A stretch of 64,000 nucleotides of DNA, from assembly GCA_047495785.1 (NCBI GenBank), contig JBLDXI010000078.1, forward strand, positions 1-64,000, written 5' to 3'. The notes below the pieces were generated by a model. The model made no database searches. It worked only from the letters and a program-made list of their open reading frames with translations, and had not been told where the DNA came from. Made by a program: the position numbers and the translations under genes. The stretch is from Lepidodermella squamata. Lineage: Eukaryota > Animalia > Gastrotricha. This document shows, piece after piece, positions 1 through 33,628 of this stretch; the stretch's first letter is position 1, and each line of letters begins with the position of its first letter.

Positions 1-113
1 TGTTGAGTAGATCGTAAAAAGAATACCAGCAACATATAAATGGCCGTGATGTGCGGAGGACTTCAACGCCGGTTCGCACCATCAATCTTTGCAGCATTCA
101 CATTAGCGTTTAA

Positions 114-1841
114 TTAGCCACCTAGTGCCTTCACAACCTCGACGTGGCCATTCTTGATGGCGATGTGCAGTGGCGTACGGCCATCTTTCTCGGCCATATT
201 CACGTCGGCGTTGAACTCGGCGGCCAATACCCTCACCACCTGGACGTGGCCCCTCTCAGCGGCGACGTACAGTGGTGTTTCGTCATCTTTCTCAGCCAAA
301 TTCACGTTGGCGCGGAACTCGCCAGCCAACACCCTAACCACCTCGACCCGGCCCTGGAAGGCTGCGATGTACAGTGGCGTCCAGCCATCTTTGTCGGCCG
401 TATTCACGTCGGCGTTGAACTCGCCAGCCAACACCCTAACCACCTCGACCCGGCCCAGGAAGGCTGCGATGTACAGTGGCGTCCAGCCATTTGTTCTGGC
501 CATATTCACGTTGGCGTTGAACTCGGCGGCCAACACCCTCACCACCTGGACGTGGCCCCTCTCAGCGGCGACGTACAGTGGTGTTTCGTCATCTTTCTCA
601 GCCAAATTCACGTTGGCGCGGAACTCGCCAGCCAACACCCTAACCACCTCGACCCGGCCCTGGAAGGCTGCGATGTACAGTGGCGTTTCGCCATTTTTGT
701 CGGCCATATTCACGTTGGCGCGGAACTCGCCTGCTAACAACCTCACCACCTCGACCCAGCCATGGAAGGCTGCGATGTACAGTGGCGTCCAGCCATTTGT
801 TCTGGCCATATTCACGTTGGCGTTGAACTCGCCAGCCAACACCCTCACCACCTCGACGTGGCCTTCACGGGCGGCGACGTACATAGGCGTCCAGCCATCT
901 GTTTCGGCCATATTCACGTCGGCACGGAACTCACCAGCCAACACCCTCACCACCTCGGCGTGACCATGCATGGCGGCGCCGTGCAGTGGCGTCCAGCCTA
1001 AAATGTTAGCCATATTCACGTCGGCGTGGAACTCGCCAGCCAACACCCTCACCACCTCGACGTGGCCTTCACGGGCGGCGACGTACAGTGGCTTACGGCC
1101 ATCTTTGTCGGCCGTATTCACGTCGGCACGGAACTCACCAGCCAACACCCTCACCACCTCGGCGTGACCATGCATGGCGGCGACGTACAGTGGCGTCCAG
1201 CCATCTTTGTCGGCCGTATTCACGTCGGCGTGGAACTCGCCAGCCAACACCCTCACCACCTCGACGTGGCCTTCACGGGCGGCGACGTACAGTGGCTTAC
1301 GGCCATCTTTGTCGGCCGTATTCACGTCGGCGTTGAACTCGCCAGCCAACACCCTCACCACCTCGACGTGGCCATTACGGGCGGAGATGTGCAGTGGCGT
1401 CCAGCCATCTTTGTTGGCCATATTCACGTCGGCGTTGAACTCGCCAACCAGCGTTCTCACCACCTCGACGTGGCCTCTCCCGGCGGCGGCGTACAGTGGC
1501 GTACTGCCATAATTGGTTGCCATATTCACGTCGGCACGGAACTCGCCAGCCAACACCCTCACCACCTCGACGTGGCCATTCTCGGCAGCGACGTACAATG
1601 GCGTCCAGCCGATATTGTTGGCAATACTCACGTTTGCGTTGAACTCGCCAGCCAACACCCTCACCACATCGACGTGGCCTTTCCCGGCGGAGATGTGCAG
1701 TGGCGTCCAGCCATCTTTGTTGGCCATATTCACGTCGGCGTTGAACTCGCCAACCAACGTTCTCACCACCTCCACCAGGCCATTCTCGACGGCGATGAAC
1801 AGAGGCGTACGGCCATTTGCATTACGAAACTCAATGTCTGC
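114..1841 (-). repeat. Tandem array of ~17 x 102-bp (34-aa) ankyrin repeats
   Basis: Mirror of 20732-22459. Confidence 0.97.
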
Positions 1842-2069
1842 CTCGAACTGTCTAACCAGAAGTCGTTGTAGCCTGCCCGAGCAGCGAGGTACAACAGCGG
1901 AAACCCTTCTTCGTCTTCGCAGTTAGCGCTAAGGCCGACATCACTGTTCGCCAGTAACTGCACCAATTTCAACAAGTCCTTCCGCCGACATACGCAGTCG
2001 AACAGCTCCTAGTAATAAGTACATAGTAATTTACAACACATGGATCAAGTGTGAAAGGTAAAATAATCC

Positions 2070-2631
2070 CATAGAAAACTCTATACATGTCAGAAAGTAA
2101 CGATCTTCCTATAGTAAATAAATTCACAGCATAACGTGGAAAAGTAGGCACGCGACCTTCGTTTTAATACTCATCGCCGTACTCCGCCCATTGAAATTTT
2201 TCGATTTTCAATTATTTTCGAAAATTCCGAGAGAAAATCTTTGATTTCCTAAATATTCCAAAAAAAATTCCGGAATACTAGAAGCGCTGCTCTATCGAAT
2301 GAATCCCGTCTCATGCGACGGTTCATCTTCCAACTTTTTTTTAAATTGTCTCAAAGTTGGTCACTTTTACGAACTATCGAGTCTTTCAAGGCGGTAAAAA
2401 TTTTTATTTTACGCCGAAAAATTCCGAGAAAAATGATATGATCTTATTTGACTTTTGCCCGGTCCAACGATATAAAACTTGAACAAATCAGAATTTTTGT
2501 ATTTTTTAACCATTTTGTAGCTACTTTTAACTAGCTCAGTTTATTATCAACCTAACGCGTGATAGACAATTCAGAAAATTGTGATATTATAGGAAGATCC
2601 TTACTTTCCGATCTGTATAGAGTTATCTATG
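2070..2631. mobile_element. P-element-like MITE, 562 bp, intronic
   Basis: Termini CATAGA...TCTATG, ~44-bp imperfect TIRs (CATAGAwAACTCTATACA...GATCTTCCTATA), perfect 8-bp TSD AATAATCC at 2062-2069 and 2632-2639. The P-like label is inferred from CATAG ends plus an 8-bp TSD. Confidence 0.85.
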
Positions 2632-5600
2632 AATAATCCGAACATACCCTAACAGCATCTTCGTTTGGTTCCGCGACTGATTGGTCAGGCTGAAGAATTT
2701 GCATGGATGTCACAATGCAGATGCCATTTTTGGATTACTATAATCATACCTTCGTATATCGCATGGGTGCTGATTTCAACAGAAAACTGTTCTGTTGAAG
2801 CAGAGTTGAGGTCGGTCGATCGCCTGGAGTTACGGCGAGCATTGACAAAACGAAATCCCGGAATTCATCCGAATAGCCGCGGGAAGGGTCAAATGGCTTC
2901 ATATTATTACTAAAACATAACACATTTCAGCCTGCTGAAACTGATTCAACTCGCCGGTTTACCTCAAAACATCCACCGTTGTGGTGAACTGTAAAAAAAT
3001 ATTGAAACTTGTTGAGTGATTTCGTAGGTTCATTATCATACCGGTTCTTTGAAGTTGGCTAGTTTGAAGAGCGCAAATCCCAACGACCAAACATCACTTG
3101 CAGGTGATTTCGGTTCAAAGCTCCATACCTCAGGAGGTGAAATCCCCCACTTTGCTAGATAATACGTTTTGGAGCCCCTGTTTGGAATATGACATAATAA
3201 CGGTTAAATGCCCCTTTTCAGTCTTACTTTTCCAATTTCCCGAGGATTCCCAAGTCAGCTAGTTTCGCCGTGCCACGGTCATCGCTAAGTAGTACGTTTC
3301 TTGACGTTATGTTGCGATGAACAATACTTTGGCCGTGAAGATAAGCCAAAGCTGATACGACTTGGCGTGACCATATTTGAAGCATAATTTCCGGGATGGG
3401 TGCTGTTTCAGTCTCGACCAAGCTTTCGAAACTTCCTCCCTCACAATACTCCATCACTAAATATTTCATCGTGCAGTTGTGAGAATAAAAATCTTGACCG
3501 GAATAGGTTCCTGTAGTCGGAATATTATTACTAAGAACTAATGGATGTAGGAATTTACCTTCGAAAGCGTCAAACACCTTGACAATGTTTGCATGGATGA
3601 TATTGACCATTAACAAATCCTGAAATTCGAAAAATTAAAAAAAATTTATTTAGATTTACAGACTCTTCCCAACATAAGGCGCCGTTGTACAGCAATATTT
3701 TTACAAAATTTGTGTCATTTGAGACAATGGTCACCATCCTTAAACATCATTTTAGAACGCTGAAAACAGGTCTATATAGTAACTTTTCGAGCCGCACATT
3801 TTCCAGTTTTTTAATTCAAGTCTAACTCGTCGAAAACTGGGCCTAAATGACATAAAACAGCTTAAATTGCCGAATTTTTAGTAGAAAATGTGATTTTCGG
3901 AATCAGCGATTTTTTAACCCTAGAAATGAGTTGAAAAACAATTCAAAAAAATTCAATTCGATTCACAAAAATTTATTTTTTGCTAATTGCCGGTTGCGGT
4001 TGGCTAATTGAGAGAAAAAACGGTAACCAGTGTGCAGAGCGTCATCGATTACCCACCTACTGGGTTGTGTTTTTAATGGCAAAATCGCAATTTTAAAGGG
4101 GGCAACCATTGTGTTGAAAATTTCTCAGTTTTCTGAATGGGTGAATGACGGCGCCCGTATGAAAGTAAGTAAAAATGGAGACCCATCCCAAGGCATATAT
4201 TTATTGATGGGAACTCACTCTTTCGTGGAGAAGTTCAGCAATTCTGTCAAAGTCTTTATCAAATTCCTTGCGAAAGTTTGTAATGTTGGTTTCTTTGATA
4301 ACTACTTGCTCCTGAAAGCTCCCGTTACGTTTGTACAAATAAGATTGTCGTAGGCTGCCATGACACAGGAGTTTAACAACAGTGAACTCCGACATAGATC
4401 GATACGTCCTTGGTTCCATATTCAATACGAAGCTGAAAATGATGACAGAATGAAAAGCAGGCAGAAATAGGAATAAAGCTTCAATAATGAGCGACATTAT
4501 AATTCTCAGAAGTATCAGCGATAAGAAAACGGCGATACCGCGGGGGCTCGTCATATCATATCTGCCAGAAACGCGCTGAAATTTGAAACATTATGTGTAT
4601 ACCCTTATCTCATGGAGAGGTTCGCCGGTGTTACAGAGAACTCTTTGCTTCTTTATCTTTACGACGGCTTCGTTGAACCTTATTCATCTTACATCTCCAT
4701 AGAATGAAAAGCCGACGATTTTATATCACCTTGATGTATTGCTCATAAATAAAAAAATAAAATAAATGATATCGCGTTTAAATGGAAGATGAATAATCCT
4801 TATGACGCAAAAGGCCAGAGTAACTTGTTTTTAAAGTATATCCACGGACTCAATAGTCATCGGCTATTTCTTTCCGTTCCTTCACACTTTTCTAATTTTC
4901 ATTTTTACTTTCGACTTGGTGATTTAGAAGCGGAGTCGGAAAATGAGGGTTTATAAAAAGATACTTGATCTAACTTCCTGAAGTCACTTGAAACGGAATT
5001 AATAGTTAAGGGTTAAGGATGTCATCAAAACTTCACGAATAAATTTACTCCAATAATAGGAACTGATACAATGCTGTCTCTCAAAAGTAAAATGTTTCCT
5101 GAGAGACAGATGGGAATAATGCTACCCAAATGAATTCGCTGCTCAAGTGCGACACCAGTGTGCGACTTTCAGGGCAGATGGGGGGTATCATCCCCCCAGC
5201 TCGGCCGAAACTTCGACATTTTCCATTCAATTTTCATCTTTCACGCTTCGCGTTTCACATTCACCTTTTTTCATTCATTCAATATTCTCACGACTGTTTT
5301 TTGCGTGATTCCATATCGGCACATGCCTAATAGCGTGATCTCGCAAATATTTTGTTATACGATAGGCTATGAAATTTGCAGCCTTTTTTAAGGGGATTGA
5401 TCGAAAAGGTTCCAGTGGCAAGGCTGGAATAAGGTTTCCAAACCAACCATCCCATGATAGTTGGATTGAAGGTTCAAACTAATCTTAAACTCAAAACTCT
5501 CCAAAACCATTTAGAAATTAAAGCGCTATAAAGCTTTTATTTTTAGAGTAAATCTGAGTCATATCAACAATTTTTCCAAAAATTCTCATCTGGATTCGTT

Positions 5601-6240
5601 TCAATCAACCTCTATGAATTCATCATTAATGGTTGTACTTGGCGAGACTCGATCAGGGGAATAAATCTCAGAGTTCAAAGAGCCTTTGGGCGAGGAATTT
5701 ACTTGCGATGCTGCCGATCCTCGTTTGGTCGAAAGCTGTGCTGATCTCCTGTGCTGATACAAGTGAATTCGCAGCTGAGCGGCGTTCTCAAACAGCCGCG
5801 AACACGTGAAGCACGTCATGGCAAATTTCTCGAAATGGTGAGCTCTAACGTGAAGCCGAAAGCCGTTACGCGTGGTATAAACCCGGCGTTTGGGACAGTA
5901 ATCGCATACAAAAACTGAATTCAAAGGCTTCTTGGTGTGCAAATTTGACTTCATTTCGACGCAAGATTCGGATAAAGGGTTGACCTGTAAGAACAAGATG
6001 ATTAGCAACGTGATAGTAAAAGTTACTGAACCTTACCAGCGGCCTCTGGGAATCTTCGGAACTAAATGGTGCAGTTTCACATGGGGTTCGAGTCCTTGAG
6101 TAAGGTTGAAAAGCTGATTTCCGCTCTGAGCTGAATGTTACCAAGTTGGAATCTGCTACCTTGGAAGCCCATGGTGCTATCGTGGTTATTGAAATGATAG
6201 TCGCCTTTTTTCGCGATAGATCCAACACCCCTGTATCCAT
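5601..6240 (-). CDS. Two-finger C2H2 zinc-finger protein, left-arm copy
   Basis: Mirror of 16333-16972. Confidence 0.88.
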
Positions 6241-7261
6241 TTTTTCAAGATTTAATTTTTAGGTCTAAAGATACACAAAAACTTGTATGTAATTGAAATA
6301 AAAAAGTCTTTCATTACAAATTGACACGAAGTTATAACTGCGCAATGAAAATCAACTAGGCGATTGGAACGAAAATAAAATAATTCAAGGATGGAAAAAA
6401 ACGAGAATACATATACGCTAGCTGGGCACGCGACTGCTACGTGGCATCACCAATAACGCAATAAAAATGTCGGTGAGGTCAAATCGTCAAAACATTCCAA
6501 ATTTTTTACATTTGAAAAAACGTTTTGAATAAGGCGTTGAACACTTCTATAACCGATATAACTCAAGACTCTAGAGGTTTTCTTTTCGTAGTGAAACCGT
6601 CCAGCAGCCGCTAGTAGATTAGAAATTAGAAATTAGAAGCGTAGGTTATCCTTCCAACGTTTCTCCAATTTTTCCATCCGTTTCGGTTTTCAAAACATTC
6701 AAAGTTGAAATGAGAGCCAAAAAGAGGAATTGCATTAAAGCGGAAATGATCACAATTCTTACCAGGCTGCGACCCACAGCTATATAATAACGTTAGTTAT
6801 CGCTATTCTGTGAAGATTTGTGAAGATTAAAGTGTTTACCCTCTCTCCTGTCTGCTTAGTATTGCGCTGCAACGCGCTGCGATCATTTTTTCCCGCGTTT
6901 TGAGTAATTTCACTGAACGCGAAATAATGATGGACCTCATCGAGGTCTAGGGGCACTTTCGAATCGAGCGAAACTACTCTAATCATCTGTTACGATTTGA
7001 TCAAAAAAAATACGCGATGGTTTGGTTCGAAATTTCCTGAAAAATCGTATTTCCGTTTATCGTTAATCGAGACTCATCTCATCACTTGAATATTACATGC
7101 TTGTCCGTGACTCGAAAACGGACACCTTAGTCTGAGCAAGCCATGTGATGCCGTTTATCGAAATAAACAACCCCTGCACACGCGACCTAAATTCGCAGCA
7201 GGAATTAAATGAGCGTTTTATTTCATTCATTTTTTTATTTTAAAATAACCATTTTACATAA

Positions 7262-10200
7262 ATGACAACATTGGCTATTATTTGTGTTATTATCGGTCTG
7301 ATTCAGTCAGCCGATGCAGCTGCGTACGTGCGATGCATCTCGCGGACGAATGACGCATTCAATGGCTGCAAAACCCAATGCTTGATTCTTCAAGAGTATC
7401 AGGTGCTCTAAATTTGTCCAATAATTCCCAACATTTCTGATAAATTTGCTCTTCCCCAGCTCGGAGGAACTTTTGCGACCTTGTCAGCATGCAAAACTGG
7501 AGTGAGTTTCATTCGATCATTTCTGGTTCGTATCGCATATTGTTCCAACAGTGGGCTCGAAGCTGTTTCAACTACAAAACAATCAACATGAGATGTCTGC
7601 CTGGCAAGATGAGCTGTTCCGCTGATGAAATCGAGGTTCCATTATCAAATCGAATTGATAAAATAATTTATGTTTAAACAATTCTTTTATAAAAAATCTC
7701 AACAATCGATCGAAATTTTTTCTTTAATAGTATCGCTTGGAGAATAATTTTCTGAAATATCCTCGCTTTTCAGATCAAAAGATACATCGGCAACATTTTT
7801 GGCGCCATGTACAAATCCTGCCGTGCCGAAATTCGGAATTTTCTGGTTTCTACCCGCAAACGTTCTGGTAATATTTAAATTGTGATTGTGTTTCACAGAC
7901 CTTCCCAGCTACGCAATGCGATGACAACAGAAAATCCATCTGCATCCCATTTATTGGCAAATGTCCCAACAACTGGGTAAATTCTACCATTTCATTGTTG
8001 AAGTTTCTAATACTTTTCTTTTTTGTAGACCTTGCTGGCATACTGGGAAGAAGGTACTCAGGCTTGTATGACTGCCGCGAACAGTAAGATTGAATTTCGA
8101 TTCTAATCGTCGTCCCATTAAGCGGCATTTATCTTTGAAGTCGTCAGAAATACGAGCGATTTTTCAACAAACCTGCGATGCTTTTCAAAAAGCGATTGCT
8201 CCTTTGTTGGCTGCCAGCCAACCCAATGCGACGCGGCTCTCATGACTAGGGTTAGTGATTCGTTGAACGAATTCAATTAATATTGCTAAATTATGAATTT
8301 AGGACTATAGCCCGGAAACGTTTGCTGATAAAGCGCGCTGCCTGACTGGGGTGAGTCGAATTTTTCTGAAATGTTCATGAATTTACGGCTCATTATTTTA
8401 CAGCCAGCCGCGTTGTGTTCGACGTCCAGCGAATTGGTTTGCCGTAGCCGATGCCCGTCTCCGTTCACACTAGTAAATACTCTGGCCAAACCCTTCTGTT
8501 ACTATCTTCATGCCATCACTTTCATTTAGGTTACAACTTTCGTTAACAGCACCGATTTTACGAGCAATTACGCGAACTGTCTGGCGAAGCAGGCGACTAT
8601 GAACGGGTTTGAGATGATAATTTTTACAAAATATTGGCCTGAAGGCCGAGCAATGTGCGGTAGGATCCTGAAACCGAGATGTTTTCTAGTCCCCAGCCGA
8701 AGAAACCAAATGGTCCTCCCTGTTGTTTTTCAGCCTTCCTCTTGTTGAATTCCTGAAGCTGGGGTTTGCACCCTGGCCTGGCCGAATATCCATCGATATC
8801 ACCCATATTTGGGTTTTATTCAGTGGCAGATATCGGGGGTATTTTCGGGCTCAAGTTTTATAACCAAAGGTTCCCCCTTTAGGCCTTTTGGTGTTTTCAC
8901 ATAGTTCTATTGAACTAGGGGCTGCGATTCAGGTTCATAAGTTAAGAACTATCCTAAATACTAATTAAATGTAACAAATTGAAATCATGGTGCACTGTCA
9001 ATAAAGTCGAAGTTCCTAAATCCTCGTTCCCGCCGTGAAAGGTTTGAGAACTATTTCTGGGCTGCGGAACTTCCAAATGTTCTAATCAAAACAAAGGCCA
9101 TTATGTATATATTAATTCTTATTGCTAGGTATGTAAGATGTGAAGCTTCCGACGGATCCGTCAATTGCCGAAAAACCATTTGCTTACCGACTGAAACCCG
9201 CAACCCAGCGGCGGCTTCATTTTCATCCCTGTACAAGTGCCAAGTCGCGAAGAGGCAGTTTTTCATCTATGGAGGATCTGCCGACCTGACTCGAGGCGCC
9301 GCTTCTGCGCTATGCGTCGCTAACGAAGCCAAACCAGCGATGCAGAAGACCAGATATGATTTCGATGATCAGAAGAGAGCCATCGCGTTAAAATTGTCTC
9401 AGGCCGACATGGCCACAGCCGATTTCACAACGTGGGTTGGCTTGAAGAAATACGCCAATTTATCACTTATTTGGGACGACGGAACAACTTATGATTTCAA
9501 GCCCTACCAATGGAGTTCGCCCGTGGTTGTTACAAATGCTTCCATCTACTTTGAGCCAATCGATATTTGCGTCGGCATGATGTATGACAACTATTTCACG
9601 GAATTTCGCTACGATGCGATTTTATGCAATGGCACGTCAAAATTCGCCATCTGCGAGAAGGTCGCAGAGGTTAAAACCGGGGTCAGTTTTTCGAAATGGC
9701 TAAAACTGGTTGACTCTAATTCCCGTTTCATCAGATCGTGAAAATGTGCTTTGATCCTATCAAAGGTGGTGGCTGCGAGGAAACCTGCCCAGCAGGCAAA
9801 TTCGAAGTAAGGTCGTGACATATTTTTCTAATATAAAAGCTCAAATTTTGCATTAATAGGTTAGCACGTTCGGTGAAACGGAGTCTCTACAATCTGATAA
9901 TTTGAATACGTGCCAGATGAAAATTCAGGCAATTTATCTGAGCAATTATGTTTTCATCCCTTCATTTGTCCGTATATTCAAATTTTAGCCATCATACGTT
10001 CGATGTGTTGATGCTGCGACCAATTTCTCCGCTGTTTGCATTCCTTATGAATTTTCATGTCCCCCTGGAACGGTAGGTTCAACGCGAATTATTGCATATG
10101 GAAGGTTGTGAATTTTTGGAAAAATGTCGATAGACACTGGACTCTTCTAGCAGTACGATAATTCGCTACACCACGTTCGAAATATGTGCTACACCGTGAG

Positions 10201-10937
10201 TTTTAGAATTAAAATATATCCCTATAATCTAATTCTTTCAACGGGTTCGTTTGAACTTTGAACCTGAATTTAAAAAAAACGGACGGTTTCTACTTGGTAA
10301 TTAAGGTCAACCCCTCCCCTTGTACCCCTGGTACCTCACACACTGAAGCAGGGTATTTCGCTTTATTCTCGTTTCATTATGGGTTTTCTGTTTCAGATTG
10401 TTCAGCTGCGTTGCGCCGGATCAATCAATCAACTGTCGAACGAGCCGATGCTTCGAAGGCGAAACGAAATATCCATCGTCTTGGAACAATCGAATTTGCG
10501 ACTCAGCCAGCAAGGAGTTTCTGATTCTAGGAGGAAGTGAAATGACACGAACTGCAGCTATCGATCTATGCCGTAGCAACAACGCTCAAATTGCTATGCC
10601 GAAAACCTTTGAAACGAGAGAGGCTATCTTGCTGGCTAGCAGTGAAAAAGTTGAACAGGATCAACTTAACCCTGACAATTACAAAGCGTGGATTGGCTTA
10701 AGGAAACCTGCTGGTGATGATAACAACATGATTTATGAAGACGGCACGATTCGCCCTTTTTCTTACATTGATTACTTTCCCTACTTCAGTACAACGCCAG
10801 TGGAGCTTTGCTTCATTGTGAAACATGCACCAACGCCTGAAAATTATCCAGGTACACCTGGTGGGTACTTCTATGTACTGCAGAACTGTACCGATACAGC
10901 TCCTTATGTCGTCTGCGAGAAATATATTATCATGTAA
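7262..10937 (+). CDS. Secreted multi-exon protein with Cys-rich modules and two C-type-lectin-like domains
   Basis: Signal peptide MTTLAIICVIIGLIQSADA; many short exons with RC-x-C modules; CTL domains at ~9250-9660 (TWVGLKK..LIWDDGT..C..C..AICE) and ~10510-10930 (AWIGLRK..YEDGT..C..C..VVCE). Splice phases checked for several, not all, junctions. Confidence 0.8.
8651..8730 (+). mobile_element. Diverged partial copy of the hAT-like MITE family (mirror 13843-13922)
   Basis: CAATGTGCG-GTAGGATCC...CCCAGCCGAAGAAACCA resembles the copies at 43060 and 58660. Confidence 0.5.
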
Positions 10938-11006
10938 TATAATGAGCCGATTCTTCGATATTCGATAAATTGATCCTAACCTTGAACTGAACTTCTTCTT
11001 TTCATC

Positions 11007-11566
11007 GCAAACTCAGGGTATTATTATTTAGTGTGGCTATCCTCCTGGTTAGTTCGAATTTGAATATGGTTCAGCTTACAGCTAATAAATAATGTTAAGT
11101 GGCTGATTGATAGCGCTGCAAAACGCGTTACGAGCCTTTTTCTTGCGGTTTTCAGCAAATTTGCCGATCCATCTAAATACTAAATAATAAATCGATAAAT
11201 CTCATGGAATTGCGTTTAACACTTTAACTGCCCAAATTACGGCTAAAGTACCGTTGCGGTCGTAACTAAGTATCGGTATTTCTTATCAACTATAAGTTTC
11301 GTTATTTTGTACCGACATTTTTGCGGTTAGAAAATGCCGGTACTTTGTCACGTCATTGCCGGTATTTAGTACCGAATCGAGATTGAAAACTGAAGCACGG
11401 GGCACCTATATCAAAAGTTATAGGTGCAAACCAAATCATTGATGGGATTTTCAAGCTTCCGACTGAGAAATGGCTTCGGAAACCAGATTAGTGCGCGAAT
11501 TAACACTGGTTTTGAACAAAACAATATACTATATCGAGATAATTATGCTATAATGCGCCTAGTTGA
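11007..11566. other. Unique 560-bp spacer of the palindrome
   Basis: No self-complementarity; AATAAA near 11084 and 11186 on + could serve the left-arm lectin gene. Confidence 0.93.
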
Positions 11567-11635
11567 GATGAAAAGAAGAAGTTCAGTTCAAGGTTAGGAT
11601 CAATTTATCGAATATCGAAGAATCGGCTCATTATA

Positions 11636-14600
11636 TTACATGATAATATATTTCTCGCAGACGACATAAGGAGCTGTATCGGTACAGTTCTGCAGTACAT
11701 AGAAGTACCCACCAGGTGTACCTGGATAATTTTCAGGCGTTGGTGCATGTTTCACAATGAAGCAAAGCTCCACTGGCGTTGTACTGAAGTAGGGAAAGTA
11801 ATCAATGTAAGAAAAAGGGCGAATCGTGCCGTCTTCATAAATCATGTTGTTATCATCACCAGCAGGTTTCCTTAAGCCAATCCACGCTTTGTAATTGTCA
11901 GGGTTAAGTTGATCCTGTTCAACTTTTTCACTGCTAGCCAGCAAGATAGCCTCTCTCGTTTCAAAGGTTTTCGGCATAGCAATTTGAGCGTTGTTGCTAC
12001 GGCATAGATCGATAGCTGCAGTTCGTGTCATTTCACTTCCTCCTAGAATCAGAAACTCCTTGCTGGCTGAGTCGCAAATTCGATTGTTCCAAGACGATGG
12101 ATATTTCGTTTCGCCTTCGAAGCATCGGCTCGTTCGACAGTTGATTGATTGATCCGGCGCAACGCAGCTGAACAATCTGAAACAGAAAACCCATAATGAA
12201 ACGAGAATAAAGCGAAATACCCTGCTTCAGTGTGTGAGGTACCAGGGGTACAAGGGGAGGGGTTGACCTTAATTACCAAGTAGAAACCGTCCGTTTTTTT
12301 TAAATTCAGGTTCAAAGTTCAAACGAACCCGTTGAAAGAATTAGATTATAGGGATATATTTTAATTCTAAAACTCACGGTGTAGCACATATTTCGAACGT
12401 GGTGTAGCGAATTATCGTACTGCTAGAAGAGTCCAGTGTCTATCGACATTTTTCCAAAAATTCACAACCTTCCATATGCAATAATTCGCGTTGAACCTAC
12501 CGTTCCAGGGGGACATGAAAATTCATAAGGAATGCAAACAGCGGAGAAATTGGTCGCAGCATCAACACATCGAACGTATGATGGCTAAAATTTGAATATA
12601 CGGACAAATGAAGGGATGAAAACATAATTGCTCAGATAAATTGCCTGAATTTTCATCTGGCACGTATTCAAATTATCAGATTGTAGAGACTCCGTTTCAC
12701 CGAACGTGCTAACCTATTAATGCAAAATTTGAGCTTTTATATTAGAAAAATATGTCACGACCTTACTTCGAATTTGCCTGCTGGGCAGGTTTCCTCGCAG
12801 CCACCACCTTTGATAGGATCAAAGCACATTTTCACGATCTGATGAAACGGGAATTAGAGTCAACCAGTTTTAGCCATTTCGAAAAACTGACCCCGGTTTT
12901 AACCTCTGCGACCTTCTCGCAGATGGCGAATTTTGACGTGCCATTGCATAAAATCGCATCGTAGCGAAATTCCGTGAAATAGTTGTCATACATCATGCCG
13001 ACGCAAATATCGATTGGCTCAAAGTAGATGGAAGCATTTGTAACAACCACGGGCGAACTCCATTGGTAGGGCTTGAAATCATAAGTTGTTCCGTCGTCCC
13101 AAATAAGTGATAAATTGGCGTATTTCTTCAAGCCAACCCACGTTGTGAAATCGGCTGTGGCCATGTCGGCCTGAGACAATTTTAACGCGATGGCTCTCTT
13201 CTGATCATCGAAATCATATCTGGTCTTCTGCATCGCTGGTTTGGCTTCGTTAGCGACGCATAGCGCAGAAGCGGCGCCTCGAGTCAGGTCGGCAGATCCT
13301 CCATAGATGAAAAACTGCCTCTTCGCGACTTGGCACTTGTACAGGGATGAAAATGAAGCCGCCGCTGGGTTGCGGGTTTCAGTCGGTAAGCAAATGGTTT
13401 TTCGGCAATTGACGGATCCGTCGGAAGCTTCACATCTTACATACCTAGCAATAAGAATTAATATATACATAATGGCCTTTGTTTTGATTAGAACATTTGG
13501 AAGTTCCGCAGCCCAGAAATAGTTCTCAAACCTTTCACGGCGGGAACGAGGATTTAGGAACTTCGACTTTATTGACAGTGCACCATGATTTCAATTTGTT
13601 ACATTTAATTAGTATTTAGGATAGTTCTTAACTTATGAACCTGAATCGCAGCCCCTAGTTCAATAGAACTATGTGAAAACACCAAAAGGCCTAAAGGGGG
13701 AACCTTTGGTTATAAAACTTGAGCCCGAAAATACCCCCGATATCTGCCACTGAATAAAACCCAAATATGGGTGATATCGATGGATATTCGGCCAGGCCAG
13801 GGTGCAAACCCCAGCTTCAGGAATTCAACAAGAGGAAGGCTGAAAAACAACAGGGAGGACCATTTGGTTTCTTCGGCTGGGGACTAGAAAACATCTCGGT
13901 TTCAGGATCCTACCGCACATTGCTCGGCCTTCAGGCCAATATTTTGTAAAAATTATCATCTCAAACCCGTTCATAGTCGCCTGCTTCGCCAGACAGTTCG
14001 CGTAATTGCTCGTAAAATCGGTGCTGTTAACGAAAGTTGTAACCTAAATGAAAGTGATGGCATGAAGATAGTAACAGAAGGGTTTGGCCAGAGTATTTAC
14101 TAGTGTGAACGGAGACGGGCATCGGCTACGGCAAACCAATTCGCTGGACGTCGAACACAACGCGGCTGGCTGTAAAATAATGAGCCGTAAATTCATGAAC
14201 ATTTCAGAAAAATTCGACTCACCCCAGTCAGGCAGCGCGCTTTATCAGCAAACGTTTCCGGGCTATAGTCCTAAATTCATAATTTAGCAATATTAATTGA
14301 ATTCGTTCAACGAATCACTAACCCTAGTCATGAGAGCCGCGTCGCATTGGGTTGGCTGGCAGCCAACAAAGGAGCAATCGCTTTTTGAAAAGCATCGCAG
14401 GTTTGTTGAAAAATCGCTCGTATTTCTGACGACTTCAAAGATAAATGCCGCTTAATGGGACGACGATTAGAATCGAAATTCAATCTTACTGTTCGCGGCA
14501 GTCATACAAGCCTGAGTACCTTCTTCCCAGTATGCCAGCAAGGTCTACAAAAAAGAAAAGTATTAGAAACTTCAACAATGAAATGGTAGAATTTACCCAG

Positions 14601-15311
14601 TTGTTGGGACATTTGCCAATAAATGGGATGCAGATGGATTTTCTGTTGTCATCGCATTGCGTAGCTGGGAAGGTCTGTGAAACACAATCACAATTTAAAT
14701 ATTACCAGAACGTTTGCGGGTAGAAACCAGAAAATTCCGAATTTCGGCACGGCAGGATTTGTACATGGCGCCAAAAATGTTGCCGATGTATCTTTTGATC
14801 TGAAAAGCGAGGATATTTCAGAAAATTATTCTCCAAGCGATACTATTAAAGAAAAAATTTCGATCGATTGTTGAGATTTTTTATAAAAGAATTGTTTAAA
14901 CATAAATTATTTTATCAATTCGATTTGATAATGGAACCTCGATTTCATCAGCGGAACAGCTCATCTTGCCAGGCAGACATCTCATGTTGATTGTTTTGTA
15001 GTTGAAACAGCTTCGAGCCCACTGTTGGAACAATATGCGATACGAACCAGAAATGATCGAATGAAACTCACTCCAGTTTTGCATGCTGACAAGGTCGCAA
15101 AAGTTCCTCCGAGCTGGGGAAGAGCAAATTTATCAGAAATGTTGGGAATTATTGGACAAATTTAGAGCACCTGATACTCTTGAAGAATCAAGCATTGGGT
15201 TTTGCAGCCATTGAATGCGTCATTCGTCCGCGAGATGCATCGCACGTACGCAGCTGCATCGGCTGACTGAATCAGACCGATAATAACACAAATAATAGCC
15301 AATGTTGTCAT
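11636..15311 (-). CDS. Secreted Cys-rich / double C-type lectin protein, right-arm copy
   Basis: Exact mirror of 7262-10937. Confidence 0.8.
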
Positions 15312-16332
15312 TTATGTAAAATGGTTATTTTAAAATAAAAAAATGAATGAAATAAAACGCTCATTTAATTCCTGCTGCGAATTTAGGTCGCGTGTGCAGG
15401 GGTTGTTTATTTCGATAAACGGCATCACATGGCTTGCTCAGACTAAGGTGTCCGTTTTCGAGTCACGGACAAGCATGTAATATTCAAGTGATGAGATGAG
15501 TCTCGATTAACGATAAACGGAAATACGATTTTTCAGGAAATTTCGAACCAAACCATCGCGTATTTTTTTTGATCAAATCGTAACAGATGATTAGAGTAGT
15601 TTCGCTCGATTCGAAAGTGCCCCTAGACCTCGATGAGGTCCATCATTATTTCGCGTTCAGTGAAATTACTCAAAACGCGGGAAAAAATGATCGCAGCGCG
15701 TTGCAGCGCAATACTAAGCAGACAGGAGAGAGGGTAAACACTTTAATCTTCACAAATCTTCACAGAATAGCGATAACTAACGTTATTATATAGCTGTGGG
15801 TCGCAGCCTGGTAAGAATTGTGATCATTTCCGCTTTAATGCAATTCCTCTTTTTGGCTCTCATTTCAACTTTGAATGTTTTGAAAACCGAAACGGATGGA
15901 AAAATTGGAGAAACGTTGGAAGGATAACCTACGCTTCTAATTTCTAATTTCTAATCTACTAGCGGCTGCTGGACGGTTTCACTACGAAAAGAAAACCTCT
16001 AGAGTCTTGAGTTATATCGGTTATAGAAGTGTTCAACGCCTTATTCAAAACGTTTTTTCAAATGTAAAAAATTTGGAATGTTTTGACGATTTGACCTCAC
16101 CGACATTTTTATTGCGTTATTGGTGATGCCACGTAGCAGTCGCGTGCCCAGCTAGCGTATATGTATTCTCGTTTTTTTCCATCCTTGAATTATTTTATTT
16201 TCGTTCCAATCGCCTAGTTGATTTTCATTGCGCAGTTATAACTTCGTGTCAATTTGTAATGAAAGACTTTTTTATTTCAATTACATACAAGTTTTTGTGT
16301 ATCTTTAGACCTAAAAATTAAATCTTGAAAAA

Positions 16333-16972
16333 ATGGATACAGGGGTGTTGGATCTATCGCGAAAAAAGGCGACTATCATTTCAATAACCACGATAGCACC
16401 ATGGGCTTCCAAGGTAGCAGATTCCAACTTGGTAACATTCAGCTCAGAGCGGAAATCAGCTTTTCAACCTTACTCAAGGACTCGAACCCCATGTGAAACT
16501 GCACCATTTAGTTCCGAAGATTCCCAGAGGCCGCTGGTAAGGTTCAGTAACTTTTACTATCACGTTGCTAATCATCTTGTTCTTACAGGTCAACCCTTTA
16601 TCCGAATCTTGCGTCGAAATGAAGTCAAATTTGCACACCAAGAAGCCTTTGAATTCAGTTTTTGTATGCGATTACTGTCCCAAACGCCGGGTTTATACCA
16701 CGCGTAACGGCTTTCGGCTTCACGTTAGAGCTCACCATTTCGAGAAATTTGCCATGACGTGCTTCACGTGTTCGCGGCTGTTTGAGAACGCCGCTCAGCT
16801 GCGAATTCACTTGTATCAGCACAGGAGATCAGCACAGCTTTCGACCAAACGAGGATCGGCAGCATCGCAAGTAAATTCCTCGCCCAAAGGCTCTTTGAAC
16901 TCTGAGATTTATTCCCCTGATCGAGTCTCGCCAAGTACAACCATTAATGATGAATTCATAGAGGTTGATTGA
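16333..16972 (+). CDS. Two-finger C2H2 zinc-finger protein (~195 aa), probable repressor
   Basis: Exons 16333-16536 and 16589-16972 (GT-AG, phase 0); fingers CDYC..HVRAHH and CFTC..HLYQH; N-terminal VLDLS resembles the PxDLS CtBP-binding motif. Confidence 0.88.
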
Positions 16973-19941
16973 AACGAATCCAGATGAGAATTTTTGGAAA
17001 AATTGTTGATATGACTCAGATTTACTCTAAAAATAAAAGCTTTATAGCGCTTTAATTTCTAAATGGTTTTGGAGAGTTTTGAGTTTAAGATTAGTTTGAA
17101 CCTTCAATCCAACTATCATGGGATGGTTGGTTTGGAAACCTTATTCCAGCCTTGCCACTGGAACCTTTTCGATCAATCCCCTTAAAAAAGGCTGCAAATT
17201 TCATAGCCTATCGTATAACAAAATATTTGCGAGATCACGCTATTAGGCATGTGCCGATATGGAATCACGCAAAAAACAGTCGTGAGAATATTGAATGAAT
17301 GAAAAAAGGTGAATGTGAAACGCGAAGCGTGAAAGATGAAAATTGAATGGAAAATGTCGAAGTTTCGGCCGAGCTGGGGGGATGATACCCCCCATCTGCC
17401 CTGAAAGTCGCACACTGGTGTCGCACTTGAGCAGCGAATTCATTTGGGTAGCATTATTCCCATCTGTCTCTCAGGAAACATTTTACTTTTGAGAGACAGC
17501 ATTGTATCAGTTCCTATTATTGGAGTAAATTTATTCGTGAAGTTTTGATGACATCCTTAACCCTTAACTATTAATTCCGTTTCAAGTGACTTCAGGAAGT
17601 TAGATCAAGTATCTTTTTATAAACCCTCATTTTCCGACTCCGCTTCTAAATCACCAAGTCGAAAGTAAAAATGAAAATTAGAAAAGTGTGAAGGAACGGA
17701 AAGAAATAGCCGATGACTATTGAGTCCGTGGATATACTTTAAAAACAAGTTACTCTGGCCTTTTGCGTCATAAGGATTATTCATCTTCCATTTAAACGCG
17801 ATATCATTTATTTTATTTTTTTATTTATGAGCAATACATCAAGGTGATATAAAATCGTCGGCTTTTCATTCTATGGAGATGTAAGATGAATAAGGTTCAA
17901 CGAAGCCGTCGTAAAGATAAAGAAGCAAAGAGTTCTCTGTAACACCGGCGAACCTCTCCATGAGATAAGGGTATACACATAATGTTTCAAATTTCAGCGC
18001 GTTTCTGGCAGATATGATATGACGAGCCCCCGCGGTATCGCCGTTTTCTTATCGCTGATACTTCTGAGAATTATAATGTCGCTCATTATTGAAGCTTTAT
18101 TCCTATTTCTGCCTGCTTTTCATTCTGTCATCATTTTCAGCTTCGTATTGAATATGGAACCAAGGACGTATCGATCTATGTCGGAGTTCACTGTTGTTAA
18201 ACTCCTGTGTCATGGCAGCCTACGACAATCTTATTTGTACAAACGTAACGGGAGCTTTCAGGAGCAAGTAGTTATCAAAGAAACCAACATTACAAACTTT
18301 CGCAAGGAATTTGATAAAGACTTTGACAGAATTGCTGAACTTCTCCACGAAAGAGTGAGTTCCCATCAATAAATATATGCCTTGGGATGGGTCTCCATTT
18401 TTACTTACTTTCATACGGGCGCCGTCATTCACCCATTCAGAAAACTGAGAAATTTTCAACACAATGGTTGCCCCCTTTAAAATTGCGATTTTGCCATTAA
18501 AAACACAACCCAGTAGGTGGGTAATCGATGACGCTCTGCACACTGGTTACCGTTTTTTCTCTCAATTAGCCAACCGCAACCGGCAATTAGCAAAAAATAA
18601 ATTTTTGTGAATCGAATTGAATTTTTTTGAATTGTTTTTCAACTCATTTCTAGGGTTAAAAAATCGCTGATTCCGAAAATCACATTTTCTACTAAAAATT
18701 CGGCAATTTAAGCTGTTTTATGTCATTTAGGCCCAGTTTTCGACGAGTTAGACTTGAATTAAAAAACTGGAAAATGTGCGGCTCGAAAAGTTACTATATA
18801 GACCTGTTTTCAGCGTTCTAAAATGATGTTTAAGGATGGTGACCATTGTCTCAAATGACACAAATTTTGTAAAAATATTGCTGTACAACGGCGCCTTATG
18901 TTGGGAAGAGTCTGTAAATCTAAATAAATTTTTTTTAATTTTTCGAATTTCAGGATTTGTTAATGGTCAATATCATCCATGCAAACATTGTCAAGGTGTT
19001 TGACGCTTTCGAAGGTAAATTCCTACATCCATTAGTTCTTAGTAATAATATTCCGACTACAGGAACCTATTCCGGTCAAGATTTTTATTCTCACAACTGC
19101 ACGATGAAATATTTAGTGATGGAGTATTGTGAGGGAGGAAGTTTCGAAAGCTTGGTCGAGACTGAAACAGCACCCATCCCGGAAATTATGCTTCAAATAT
19201 GGTCACGCCAAGTCGTATCAGCTTTGGCTTATCTTCACGGCCAAAGTATTGTTCATCGCAACATAACGTCAAGAAACGTACTACTTAGCGATGACCGTGG
19301 CACGGCGAAACTAGCTGACTTGGGAATCCTCGGGAAATTGGAAAAGTAAGACTGAAAAGGGGCATTTAACCGTTATTATGTCATATTCCAAACAGGGGCT
19401 CCAAAACGTATTATCTAGCAAAGTGGGGGATTTCACCTCCTGAGGTATGGAGCTTTGAACCGAAATCACCTGCAAGTGATGTTTGGTCGTTGGGATTTGC
19501 GCTCTTCAAACTAGCCAACTTCAAAGAACCGGTATGATAATGAACCTACGAAATCACTCAACAAGTTTCAATATTTTTTTACAGTTCACCACAACGGTGG
19601 ATGTTTTGAGGTAAACCGGCGAGTTGAATCAGTTTCAGCAGGCTGAAATGTGTTATGTTTTAGTAATAATATGAAGCCATTTGACCCTTCCCGCGGCTAT
19701 TCGGATGAATTCCGGGATTTCGTTTTGTCAATGCTCGCCGTAACTCCAGGCGATCGACCGACCTCAACTCTGCTTCAACAGAACAGTTTTCTGTTGAAAT
19801 CAGCACCCATGCGATATACGAAGGTATGATTATAGTAATCCAAAAATGGCATCTGCATTGTGACATCCATGCAAATTCTTCAGCCTGACCAATCAGTCGC
19901 GGAACCAAACGAAGATGCTGTTAGGGTATGTTCGGATTATT

Positions 19942-20503
19942 CATAGATAACTCTATACAGATCGGAAAGTAAGGATCTTCCTATAATATCACAATTTTCT
20001 GAATTGTCTATCACGCGTTAGGTTGATAATAAACTGAGCTAGTTAAAAGTAGCTACAAAATGGTTAAAAAATACAAAAATTCTGATTTGTTCAAGTTTTA
20101 TATCGTTGGACCGGGCAAAAGTCAAATAAGATCATATCATTTTTCTCGGAATTTTTCGGCGTAAAATAAAAATTTTTACCGCCTTGAAAGACTCGATAGT
20201 TCGTAAAAGTGACCAACTTTGAGACAATTTAAAAAAAAGTTGGAAGATGAACCGTCGCATGAGACGGGATTCATTCGATAGAGCAGCGCTTCTAGTATTC
20301 CGGAATTTTTTTTGGAATATTTAGGAAATCAAAGATTTTCTCTCGGAATTTTCGAAAATAATTGAAAATCGAAAAATTTCAATGGGCGGAGTACGGCGAT
20401 GAGTATTAAAACGAAGGTCGCGTGCCTACTTTTCCACGTTATGCTGTGAATTTATTTACTATAGGAAGATCGTTACTTTCTGACATGTATAGAGTTTTCT
20501 ATG
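19942..20503. mobile_element. P-element-like MITE (mirror copy)
   Basis: Mirror of 2070-2631; TSD GGATTATT. Confidence 0.85.
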
Positions 20504-20731
20504 GGATTATTTTACCTTTCACACTTGATCCATGTGTTGTAAATTACTATGTACTTATTACTAGGAGCTGTTCGACTGCGTATGTCGGCGGAAGGACTTG
20601 TTGAAATTGGTGCAGTTACTGGCGAACAGTGATGTCGGCCTTAGCGCTAACTGCGAAGACGAAGAAGGGTTTCCGCTGTTGTACCTCGCTGCTCGGGCAG
20701 GCTACAACGACTTCTGGTTAGACAGTTCGAG

Positions 20732-22459
20732 GCAGACATTGAGTTTCGTAATGCAAATGGCCGTACGCCTCTGTTCATCGCCGTCGAGAATGGCCTGGTG
20801 GAGGTGGTGAGAACGTTGGTTGGCGAGTTCAACGCCGACGTGAATATGGCCAACAAAGATGGCTGGACGCCACTGCACATCTCCGCCGGGAAAGGCCACG
20901 TCGATGTGGTGAGGGTGTTGGCTGGCGAGTTCAACGCAAACGTGAGTATTGCCAACAATATCGGCTGGACGCCATTGTACGTCGCTGCCGAGAATGGCCA
21001 CGTCGAGGTGGTGAGGGTGTTGGCTGGCGAGTTCCGTGCCGACGTGAATATGGCAACCAATTATGGCAGTACGCCACTGTACGCCGCCGCCGGGAGAGGC
21101 CACGTCGAGGTGGTGAGAACGCTGGTTGGCGAGTTCAACGCCGACGTGAATATGGCCAACAAAGATGGCTGGACGCCACTGCACATCTCCGCCCGTAATG
21201 GCCACGTCGAGGTGGTGAGGGTGTTGGCTGGCGAGTTCAACGCCGACGTGAATACGGCCGACAAAGATGGCCGTAAGCCACTGTACGTCGCCGCCCGTGA
21301 AGGCCACGTCGAGGTGGTGAGGGTGTTGGCTGGCGAGTTCCACGCCGACGTGAATACGGCCGACAAAGATGGCTGGACGCCACTGTACGTCGCCGCCATG
21401 CATGGTCACGCCGAGGTGGTGAGGGTGTTGGCTGGTGAGTTCCGTGCCGACGTGAATACGGCCGACAAAGATGGCCGTAAGCCACTGTACGTCGCCGCCC
21501 GTGAAGGCCACGTCGAGGTGGTGAGGGTGTTGGCTGGCGAGTTCCACGCCGACGTGAATATGGCTAACATTTTAGGCTGGACGCCACTGCACGGCGCCGC
21601 CATGCATGGTCACGCCGAGGTGGTGAGGGTGTTGGCTGGTGAGTTCCGTGCCGACGTGAATATGGCCGAAACAGATGGCTGGACGCCTATGTACGTCGCC
21701 GCCCGTGAAGGCCACGTCGAGGTGGTGAGGGTGTTGGCTGGCGAGTTCAACGCCAACGTGAATATGGCCAGAACAAATGGCTGGACGCCACTGTACATCG
21801 CAGCCTTCCATGGCTGGGTCGAGGTGGTGAGGTTGTTAGCAGGCGAGTTCCGCGCCAACGTGAATATGGCCGACAAAAATGGCGAAACGCCACTGTACAT
21901 CGCAGCCTTCCAGGGCCGGGTCGAGGTGGTTAGGGTGTTGGCTGGCGAGTTCCGCGCCAACGTGAATTTGGCTGAGAAAGATGACGAAACACCACTGTAC
22001 GTCGCCGCTGAGAGGGGCCACGTCCAGGTGGTGAGGGTGTTGGCCGCCGAGTTCAACGCCAACGTGAATATGGCCAGAACAAATGGCTGGACGCCACTGT
22101 ACATCGCAGCCTTCCTGGGCCGGGTCGAGGTGGTTAGGGTGTTGGCTGGCGAGTTCAACGCCGACGTGAATACGGCCGACAAAGATGGCTGGACGCCACT
22201 GTACATCGCAGCCTTCCAGGGCCGGGTCGAGGTGGTTAGGGTGTTGGCTGGCGAGTTCCGCGCCAACGTGAATTTGGCTGAGAAAGATGACGAAACACCA
22301 CTGTACGTCGCCGCTGAGAGGGGCCACGTCCAGGTGGTGAGGGTATTGGCCGCCGAGTTCAACGCCGACGTGAATATGGCCGAGAAAGATGGCCGTACGC
22401 CACTGCACATCGCCATCAAGAATGGCCACGTCGAGGTTGTGAAGGCACTAGGTGGCTAA
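20732..22459 (+). repeat. Tandem array of ~17 x 102-bp ankyrin repeats, GC-rich, intronless
   Basis: Unit consensus ADVNMAxxxGxTPLYxAAxxGHVEVVRVLAGEFx; repeats 6=8 and 13=16 are identical in protein. Confidence 0.97.
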
Positions 22460-25400
22460 TTAAACGCTAATGTGAATGCTGCAAAGATTGATGGTGCGAA
22501 CCGGCGTTGAAGTCCTCCGCACATCACGGCCATTTATATGTTGCTGGTATTCTTTTTACGATCTACTCAACATCGACGCAGTAGATCGTCGCAATGGGAC
22601 AGCCTTGCGCTGTGCGCTGAGAACTGTCATGCGAGAGCTTTCTACAGATTAAGCGCAAGACTACCGAAATACTCAAACTGCCAAAATAAAAATAGCTCCC
22701 GCCAACATATACCTCCTGGACACAATGACTCAAGAATATCTGGGGAAACGTTGGTGAAACTTTATAGAAAATGACGCGCTGATAAATTGCTATTGCCCAG
22801 CGCCAAACTATATTCCAGAAAAATATGGCTCAAATGTTGCAGAATAAAATCGAAGCTGGATGCGTCATTTCGCCTTGCATCGAGTGTAAAGACGCTAGAT
22901 CGGCGAAAACGTGGCCATGGAATCCGAATGTGACGAAGCAAATTTGACTTTGACGAAAGCGCACCTGGGATTTCAATGTTTTTTTTTATCAAGAAGTAAC
23001 AGTCAAGCGAAGTCCACATTTGCGCGTCATGCGCTAATAAAAGGAAAATAAAAATATTAAATATTAGACATCCGAGAGCTGAAGATATGGTGACCGTAGA
23101 GAATCGTAAATCAGACTTTGTCTGGGTCAAATTGCTCCCGAGAGGCCTTGTTACCGTCATTCGGGGCTATCGCAGGATACGGGGCTATTCGGTAAAAAGT
23201 TTGTTCAATTACTAGAATTAAGCTTACTCAAAAACTATAAAGTCAAAGTCGATAAATTTGTGCAGGGAGCTACCTCGATAGATGACACTTATTCTATCAA
23301 AAGTAGGAGTTCAAAGAGTAAACGGTTATGAAGCTGCAGGCTCACCTTTCAGGTGTAAGTTTAACTCAAGAAAACCCCTGTGTTGCATTGAATTACCTGG
23401 ACCGGAATAGATGATTGCAAGGCTCTCGACCAATTACTTCTGAATCTACGGACGCTTAGGACCTTTGGAAAATTTGAAACTCCCCGATCCGATGCATATT
23501 TTTGTCAATTTAATTGAAACCGAATAGCCCCATCGATAAGCGAAGTTGAAGGGTAATTCTTCCAACATGATTGAATATTCTAATGAGCTGGGTTGTTGGT
23601 ATGTTTCTCGGTAAATTACGCAGACTTTGAATTTAAGAGGCTTGGTAAACTTGTGATTAGGCTTATCGGGTGACAGGCTGATTATGCATTCGGCAATGAA
23701 AATTAAAAATTAATTACAAGTCCCTCGATAAAAGCACTGGGTCGGGAGCCAGACTCGGTCTTTAAACAAGGGAAAGCTATAACGAGGGCTGTAATTGAAT
23801 GCAGGAGCTAAAAATAGACCGTTTCTACGCCTTGAGACAGTTGCCATGCCAACGCGCAGAAAGAGACGGACACCGATTACGTGTCATTACAAATTTCGCT
23901 CGCTAAAGGCCGTTAAACAATGACACTATGAATCATTAGTCGGCTTTGATTTAACTGGTTGGCCTTGTTTTTTTACTCTGATTTCAAGTCCTGCCTGGGG
24001 TTAACGAACAAAAAAACCTGGAATCTCATTATTTCAATTTACTTCAAAAATGCCCAGCTCGTCCGATTTCGCAAACAAATTTCATTTGAAATCACAGCTC
24101 ATTTGACAAAATCAATCACCTTGGTCAAGATTGACCAGAATACTTCTGAATCACCAGCAAATTCAGCCAAACATGCTCAAGATAATGATGTGTTCAATTC
24201 TCAATTCATAACTCATGCTTAATTCGTAGAATTATTTAAAAAACAATCTGAAATTTGAAACAATTAGGATGAAAAATGTATTTTCGACAATTTTTTCGCG
24301 GTTAACCTGACTTTTTCTTTTTTTAAATTCATCGAATTAATGGCATTGAGCAATCACGGACCGATTTCACGGCATAAGACGTGTGGTTCCGTCAAGAGGG
24401 CGTTTAGATTGAATGGAATACATTTGCATCTTCTCAGGCGTGATCTCATTTTCATTCGACTGGCCTATTAAGATCCGAGCAAGGTAAAAATCGGGCAGAA
24501 GCTCCCGCCGCCCCTCCTCGGGATGTTGCGATTTTCAAAGTCAAAATCGAATTATTAAAAGTTGTAAAAAAACCCGTAAAATTAATTGCCAAGGCGTAGA
24601 GCAATGAAATCGTAGTGGCAGCCAGTTTCATGTTAGATCAGGCCTATCGACTATCGAAAATCGGCTAATAATCCAATAACTTAGGACAACTGGAACGAAT
24701 GAAAACGATCTAATTTTATGAGAATAAATCCATTTATCGAAATCAAAATAAATCGTAAAACCAGGACGCGATTCTTCATGATTACGCAACACAGCCGGGA
24801 ACAAAATTGGGGAAACAGTTTCCTTAAAAAAATCACGAATTAAATCCTAATTTGATCATGCTAATAATGCTTGTAAATTGCAAGAGATTTTCTGGCCGGG
24901 AAAAAGCTAAAAAATGAAAAATCAGGGCAATTCAGATGAGTCTTTTAGTTGATCAGCAATTGGCCTGAGGGAAAATCAGAAAATCAAGGAGAGTTAAGAT
25001 TGACGGGCATTTTTATAGTTATTGAAATAAATTGCTGATTTTGTCTGATTAATTGGCGTAATTTCTGATAGAAAAGTTTAACAAAAAAGCAGGAAGACTC
25101 GCAGCGCGACTTGAGTGGCAGCTAATCCCCACACTCTGTTGCATAATCACAGCCATTTCAAAGCCACAAGAGCAGCTTAATGCACTGATGATCTTTCAAC
25201 TCGTTTGAACTAAACTTGAAATAACTGGATCTCCCAAAACCACGACAACGCGCCGCTAGGTTTCCAGGAACGCTTTATTATTTTTATTTTTCACGCTTAA
25301 TTTTTTTAATCTATCAAAAAATTATTATTTGTTTAAATAAAAATTTACAACTAATTTATTTAGCAGGGTCCAAAATTACGGTCTACAAACGAGGGAGTTC

Positions 25401-32658: not shown

Positions 32659-33628
32659 GTTTTTTGACAAGATGAATGTCTCAATGTATGCTGGCTTGCG
32701 GCGATCTGAGAACAACAAATTGTGTAGTTAATTGAGCTGGTTCAATTGCTTGCGGTTGTTGTGATAAGTGCGTCACGGAAAAAAATACGCTTTAATATTT
32801 TATGATGGCGAGCCGTCGATTTGATTCGATGTCAAGTGCGATCACTTTATTTTTTATTTTATATTTAACCAGACATGAATTAACAAATCTAAGGACAAAT
32901 ATCTTATTCAGCTATTATAAGAGTGATCTGGGGTACTTCCTAGAAATTTCTCGAGATCAATCTAAAATTGAATTATTTTTCCGAATTGCGGAATTCTCAC
33001 CATTCGGTTCAGATTTCAAGCCAAGGTTAGTGATTTTCTTGTCTCATTATTTCGATACATTAATTCCATCTACTGCGCCTACCACTCAACCATCAGGCAG
33101 CTTCTATCTCGATGAAGTCAGAATATTCTGTTAATCACGTAGGATCATGGCTAGGAAAAGCTAACAGCCCCACACTTATGTCTCTAATCAGCCTAGCATG
33201 TGCATTGGCGACTCAATTTTGCTTCGGGATAAAAATCAGCAAATAAACCTAGTTCATTCCTAGCCGCGTAGAGAACATGAAGAACTCGCACTGGAACTTT
33301 GAAATATGAATTCAAAGCGGTTTTTGAGCAGGATCTTCTCGCTAAATGCGAGATACCACAGTCCATTCAGCCATCCGAGCATTCGGCCACAGTCCATGGT
33401 CCCGTTTCACTCGATCATCAGCCAATTTTAAACTAATTTCAACCAGAAATGCGTTAGCTCATCTTTAGCCATTTGGTAATGGAACTCGCTCAGCTTTAGC
33501 AATAAACTCAGGTTTTCCCTAGGCCCATTCTTGAGCATTTTTTCGTGATGTTTGGTCAATTTGAAAGGGCAAAGAGTTCAAGTTAAGAAACGAGAGATTC
33601 GAGATGTCGAGAGCCTGTCGGCTCCGTT

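Follow-up and report, generated by a model that had tools for sequence, protein, structure and literature searches.

The window, by which we mean the whole stretch of 64,000 nt analysed here, corresponds to positions 1-64000 of the 91,984-nt contig C78 in an assembly of 121.2 Mb and 151 contigs, some of the others several Mb long. A group of genes is found twice in its first 22.6 kb, in mirror-image orientation, and comprises a kinase-ankyrin gene, a putative zinc-finger gene and two lectin-like open reading frames (ORFs). These features and their mirror copies are the following:

20798-22459, plus strand: ankyrin-repeat array of 16.5 units of 102 nt, last exon of the kinase-ankyrin gene; mirror 114-1775, minus strand
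18957-19349, plus strand: protein-kinase domain exon of the kinase-ankyrin gene, covering Pkinase profile positions 54-148; mirror 3224-3616, minus strand
2744-2923, minus strand: weak match to the C-terminal end of the kinase; mirror 19650-19829
2070-2631: MITE with the kinase exons on one side and the ankyrin exon on the other
16565-16972, plus strand: C2H2 zinc-finger ORF, weak matches below the Pfam cut-offs; mirror 5601-6008, minus strand
12832-13470, minus strand: C-type-lectin-like ORF; mirror 9103-9741, plus strand
11636-12175, minus strand: C-type-lectin-like ORF whose Lectin_C match is weak (E 0.0011) and falls short of the Pfam cut-off; mirror 10398-10937, plus strand

The kinase exon lies upstream of the ankyrin array on the same strand, and the array is GC-rich. 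The two lectin-like ORFs (12832-13470 and 11636-12175) are paralogues of one another, with 31% identity (E 3e-20); a word search with the one adjoining the junction (10398-10937, mirror 11636-12175) gave no relatives. The remaining genes of the window are of kinds usual for animals, including Cys-loop channels, a trypsin, an ANF-receptor domain and a Harbinger-type transposase.

The original prediction described an exact gene-bearing palindrome with arms of at least 11 kb around a 560-bp spacer, and this was borne out when the arms were compared base by base: window positions 1-11006 are the reverse complement of 11567-22572, with 560 nt between them. A repeat search of the window returned arms at 1-11010 and 11563-22572, 552 nt apart, of which the strictly exact arms are the same intervals trimmed at the sole mismatch. 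This mismatch, the only difference between the arms, sets a G at 11007 against the complement of an A at 11566, and three further bases pair beyond it. An exact inverted repeat of 11 kb cannot have originated by chance, and identical arms necessarily share the frameshift mentioned in the original prediction. An uncorrected read error beside the junction could account for the G/T difference at 11007; alternatively, this base may mark the start of non-homologous sequence followed by a chance match of 3 nt. The parts of the structure, as we read them, are these:

1-11006, unstranded: left arm, exact reverse complement of 11567-22572; starts on base 1 of C78 and is probably a spurious copy
11006-11007, unstranded: fold-back point and novel junction; the left arm ends here with the detached last 7 nt of a MITE
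11007-11566, unstranded: spacer of 560 nt, read as native; first ~209 nt found nowhere else in the assembly, remainder MITE
11215-11573, plus strand: MITE-like element (~358 nt) whose copies on contigs C36, C31 and C29 are 92-94% identical to it
11567-22572, unstranded: right arm, the locus in its native form; continuous with its flank and colinear with C36:57.7-74.1 kb

Junctions and outer edge of the arms

The MITE-like element crosses the boundary between spacer and right arm (11566/11567) intact and ends 7 nt within the arm, and the left arm holds the reverse complement of only these last 7 nt, detached from the remainder of the element. At the single differing base, the right side (11566) agrees with the other copies of the MITE. 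Because the element is intact across this boundary, the spacer and right arm can be taken as the original arrangement, and, the right side being native, the left arm is therefore the copy and 11006/11007 the only novel junction. Of the 4 nt that follow this junction, 3 match their mirror counterparts; the assembly lacks the native left-hand continuation of the spacer, in which any priming microhomology would have to be read. Two segments of one locus have thus been joined in inverted orientation across a jump of 560 nt, a distance in the range (<10 kb) of most chimeras formed during multiple displacement amplification (MDA). The same anatomy, with one native and one novel junction, would also be produced by fold-back repair in vivo, and in this respect the junctions are also consistent with a real germline palindrome.

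The best match to the arms outside C78, at 74-93% identity, is a paralogous gene cluster on contig C36; over positions 11635-22459 the right arm is colinear with C36:57704-73669. This colinearity resumes past the outer edge, where 22647-23042 corresponds to C36:73722-74129, and no rearrangement breakpoint was seen at 22572/22573 in the comparison with this paralogue. Since the two loci are colinear on both sides of that position, the outer edge is no breakpoint in the underlying sequence. The palindrome stops at 22572 simply because the mirror of that position is the end of the contig.

The two ends of the contig

Whether position 1 is a contig end was raised as a check in the original prediction, and it is: base 1 of the window is base 1 of C78, and the left arm is cut there. 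No telomere repeat was found at this start of the contig, and a natural chromosome end at position 1 was rejected on that ground. Natural palindromes are bounded by two different flanks, and the left arm here has no unique outer flank of its own, ending instead at the first base of the contig. The arms, the spacer and window positions 22573-25000 each lack a 100% copy on any other contig of the assembly, and no such copy of positions 25001-64000 appeared among the matches listed; a second flank is therefore without any sign in the assembly. Together, arm and spacer measure 11.6 kb, which is below the mean HiFi read length of 13.4 kb given for L. squamata data (PMC11660948). Comparison of the whole of C78 with itself yielded only two long near-exact inverted repeats, each of which touches one terminus of the contig.

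The second of these lies at the right end, where the terminal 1,044 nt (C78:90941-91984) repeat C78:87566-88612 in reverse complement. The terminal tail differs from the internal copy by nine single-base indels, all of them in mononucleotide runs, and by one substitution. Contig C42 provides a second version of this region, as C42:1-6692 equals C78:84264-90949 at 100% identity and, beyond the overlap, C42 runs on for megabases without folding back. The internal copy agrees with C42, and the errors therefore sit in the tail of C78. On this comparison of contigs, the tail is demonstrably a dead-end chimeric read that retains uncorrected HiFi-type errors, since C42 contradicts it. The junction has 8/9 inverted microhomology (TTTCCAAGT against the complement of ACTAGGAAA) and lies 2,328 nt from its partner. 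The overlap of 6.7 kb shows that C78 and C42 are neighbours that the assembler left unjoined, and the tail shows directly that fold-back reads were present in the data set and were left by the assembler at contig ends.

Origin of the palindrome

The published assembly of Lepidodermella squamata comprises 122,829,359 bp in 157 contigs with a GC content of 43.3%, and was built with hifiasm 0.15.2 from HiFi reads (BioProject PRJNA1063365; mean length 13.4 kb, 83x coverage) after phi29 MDA of a single animal (PMC11660948). Its chimera screen discarded a read only if the two ends fell on different contigs, chimeras were left in for the final assembly, and no chimeric contig was reported as detected (PMC11660948). 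A screen of this design cannot see fold-backs inside one locus. Given the agreement of the assembly statistics, rather than any feature of the sequence, the assembly examined here is very probably one derived from phi29-amplified DNA with no screen for inverted chimeras.

Inverted joins over short distances are the dominant class of chimera in this chemistry. In MDA material 85% of chimeras were inverted, most join points were <10 kb apart, and priming occurred on 2-21 nt of complementarity (Lasken & Stockwell 2007, PMC1855051). In two amplified PacBio data sets 12-46% of reads were palindromic, against ~0.5% in unamplified control data, and such reads gave rise to inverted duplications in the assemblies (Warris et al. 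2018 'Pacasus', PMC6218980); in MDA-amplified nanopore data from tardigrades, more than one-third of the mitochondrial reads were often of this kind (Vecchi et al. 2026, PMC13265396). The structures on C78 resemble these phi29 chimeras (PMC1855051, PMC6218980, PMC13265396) in that segments of a single locus are joined inverted and <10 kb apart (560 nt and 2,328 nt), in the short complementary stretch at the right-end junction, and in their occurrence as an inverted duplication in the long-read assembly of a microscopic animal. They differ in that the chimeric status of the 11-kb arm of C78 is deduced from the assembly sequence and not seen in reads.

Taken together, the position at a contig end, the single novel junction, the outer edge that is no breakpoint in the colinear C36 cluster, the false fold-back at the other end of C78 that is contradicted by C42, and the match with an MDA-derived assembly favor an artefact. 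Two readings had been offered in the original prediction, a young or homogenised real palindrome of recognition genes and an assembly artefact; it is the second that this evidence favors, and the first has become improbable. We infer from the assembly sequence that the 22.6-kb palindrome is very likely a chimeric fold-back read kept at a contig end, with no real duplication of the genes. The left arm (1-11006) would accordingly have a chimeric origin and is most likely no part of the genome of the animal.

The most likely sequence of events would begin during phi29 MDA, when a growing strand moving leftwards through the right arm may have come off its template 7 nt into the MITE, primed anew 560 nt away on a strand of opposite sense, and copied back over the locus. 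A single long HiFi read from this chimeric molecule could have been the only read to reach past the spacer at a coverage gap, and the assembler would then have kept it as the terminal read of C78; the contig would begin where that read begins and owe its first 11.6 kb to it. The junction at 11006/11007 would thus be backed by a single read or very few. The absence of errors in the left arm probably reflects correction by ordinary reads of the true locus, which would overlap the arm in reverse orientation; the 1-kb tail at the right end would be too short for such overlaps and would stay uncorrected. This account of read correction draws on general knowledge of hifiasm and is offered as inference rather than result.

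The principal alternative is a real germline palindrome, produced by a very recent fold-back duplication or homogenised by gene conversion, whose left arm is merely cut by the contig end. The parthenogenetic gastrotrich would in that case carry a cluster of kinase-ankyrin and lectin-like genes in a very young or actively homogenised inverted duplication whose arms measure at least 11 kb, and this might be one among many such palindromes formed by fold-back repair beside transposon ends; we regard this as unlikely. It would be consistent with the exactness of the arms over 11,006 nt, which, unlike the right-end tail, are free of sequencing-type errors, so that many reads could back the left arm, and the match tables hint at another palindrome on contig C4. 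The position of the palindrome against the contig end could also be accommodated, as an assembler can halt part-way through the second arm where a palindrome is perfect and its arms exceed the read length; however, 83x coverage by 13-kb reads should normally span an 11-kb arm and extend the contig into the left flank, and that flank is nowhere among the assembly matches. Nor does a real duplication sit easily with an outer edge at 22572/22573 that the C36 comparison reveals as no breakpoint, with a demonstrably false fold-back at the other end of the same contig, or with data that were very probably phi29-amplified and not screened for inverted chimeras.

The palindromes P1-P8 of the human and ape Y chromosomes are kept identical by gene conversion between their arms. 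Like the structure on C78, they have long, near-identical, gene-bearing inverted arms and a unique spacer (PMC6218980). However, the Y palindromes possess both outer flanks, show twofold read depth over the arms and recur among individuals, whereas on C78 one arm lies at the contig end and the assembly contains no second flank.

A fold-back formed by other means than amplification chemistry, either as a somatic or mosaic event in some cells of the sequenced animal or through an error of library preparation or assembly (for instance a missed SMRTbell adapter or a graph mis-join), would have a geometry identical to that of an MDA chimera, and palindromic reads occur at ~0.5% even in unamplified controls (PMC6218980). 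This origin appears less probable still, because the inverted microhomology at the right end is typical of strand re-priming and because MDA chimeras would be far commoner if the data were amplified. Among its variants, the missed adapter was rejected, as such reads fold back without a genomic spacer and the spacers here are 560 and 2,328 nt. Finally, a fold-back or giant transposon that has very extensive terminal inverted repeats (TIRs) and carries host genes is effectively refuted: although fold-back-like MITEs and TIR elements do occur in this genome, as inverted pairs in the match tables, the arms are single-locus host genes confined to C78, their best other match is the colinear C36 gene cluster rather than copies of an element, no element boundary lies at 22572, and no multiple copies with shared ends and target-site duplications were found.

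Implications for the assembly and its gene counts

The draft genome of Adineta vaga offers a cautionary parallel, though no more than that: palindromes were reportedly described there at first and later ascribed to assembly error. As with C78, palindromic genes in the assembly of an asexual microscopic animal invited a biological reading, and the two cases differ in the organism and in the sequencing technology. The value of the present case lies in quality control, since C78 folds back at both of its ends, demonstrably falsely at one of them, although no chimeric contig was detected according to what is very probably the paper on this assembly (PMC11660948). Terminal fold-backs would need to be masked before gene copies, palindromes, inverted duplications or contig ends are counted in it.

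For the animal itself, the palindrome most likely means nothing: the three or four genes that seem to be duplicated would each exist once. The palindrome is most probably no genuine biological feature, and stands chiefly as a warning about this assembly.

Right end of C78 and its overlap with C42

The terminal 1,044 nt of C78, the contig that carries the window, are the reverse complement of a segment 2.3 kb further in, giving two inverted fold-back copies (L036 is the right-end piece of C78):

C78:87566-88612 (L036:3566-4612), inner copy
C78:90941-91984 (L036:6941-7984), terminal fold-back tail

The tail contains nine homopolymer indels, and its junction lies at an inverted microhomology of 8/9. 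C78:84264-90949 (L036:264-6949) overlaps C42:1-6692 at 100% identity over 6.7 kb, and the assembler left the two separate. C78 is therefore the left neighbour of C42, a multi-Mb contig.

A candidate palindrome on C4

On C4, another contig of the assembly, transposon matches form three mirror pairs at 2927750-2947461 around a common centre at about 2,937,615, as judged from match coordinates only. These coordinates suggest a further candidate palindrome, each arm of which would measure at least 9.8 kb. Because none of the genome searches run gave a C4 match past 2,947,461, this candidate may also touch a contig end.

Colinearity with C36 and genes of the unique part

Window 11600-53000 is colinear with 57-216 kb of contig C36, with uneven identity:

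11.6-23 kb, 74-93%
30.3-41.8 kb, 88-96%
45.0-48.2 kb, 96%

C36 and C78 would be related either through an old segmental duplication or as a strongly diverged second haplotype retained in the primary assembly. The unique part of the window encodes two Cys-loop ligand-gated channel ORFs, a trypsin ORF, an ANF-receptor-domain ORF and a Harbinger-type (DDE_Tnp_4) transposase, in these intervals:

30280-35409 (-)
45045-45809 (-)
51203-53064 (+)
53513-54960 (-)

The kinase-ankyrin family and a MITE in the window copy

A MITE with terminal inverted repeats of 47 nt (window 2070-2631) separates the ankyrin exon from the kinase exons. Relatives in other parts of the genome are frequently paired in inverted orientation at a distance of about 150 nt, and these pairs look like a fold-back-type element, not a misassembly.

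The kinase-ankyrin genes form a large family, in which an N-terminal protein-kinase domain precedes a long ankyrin array that is GC-rich and built of 102-nt units. Window 114-3616 (-) belongs to this family, which has many matches on C34, C36, C17 and C4; the paralogues number in the dozens, with clusters on C34 and C36. RIPK4/ANKK1 share this domain order.
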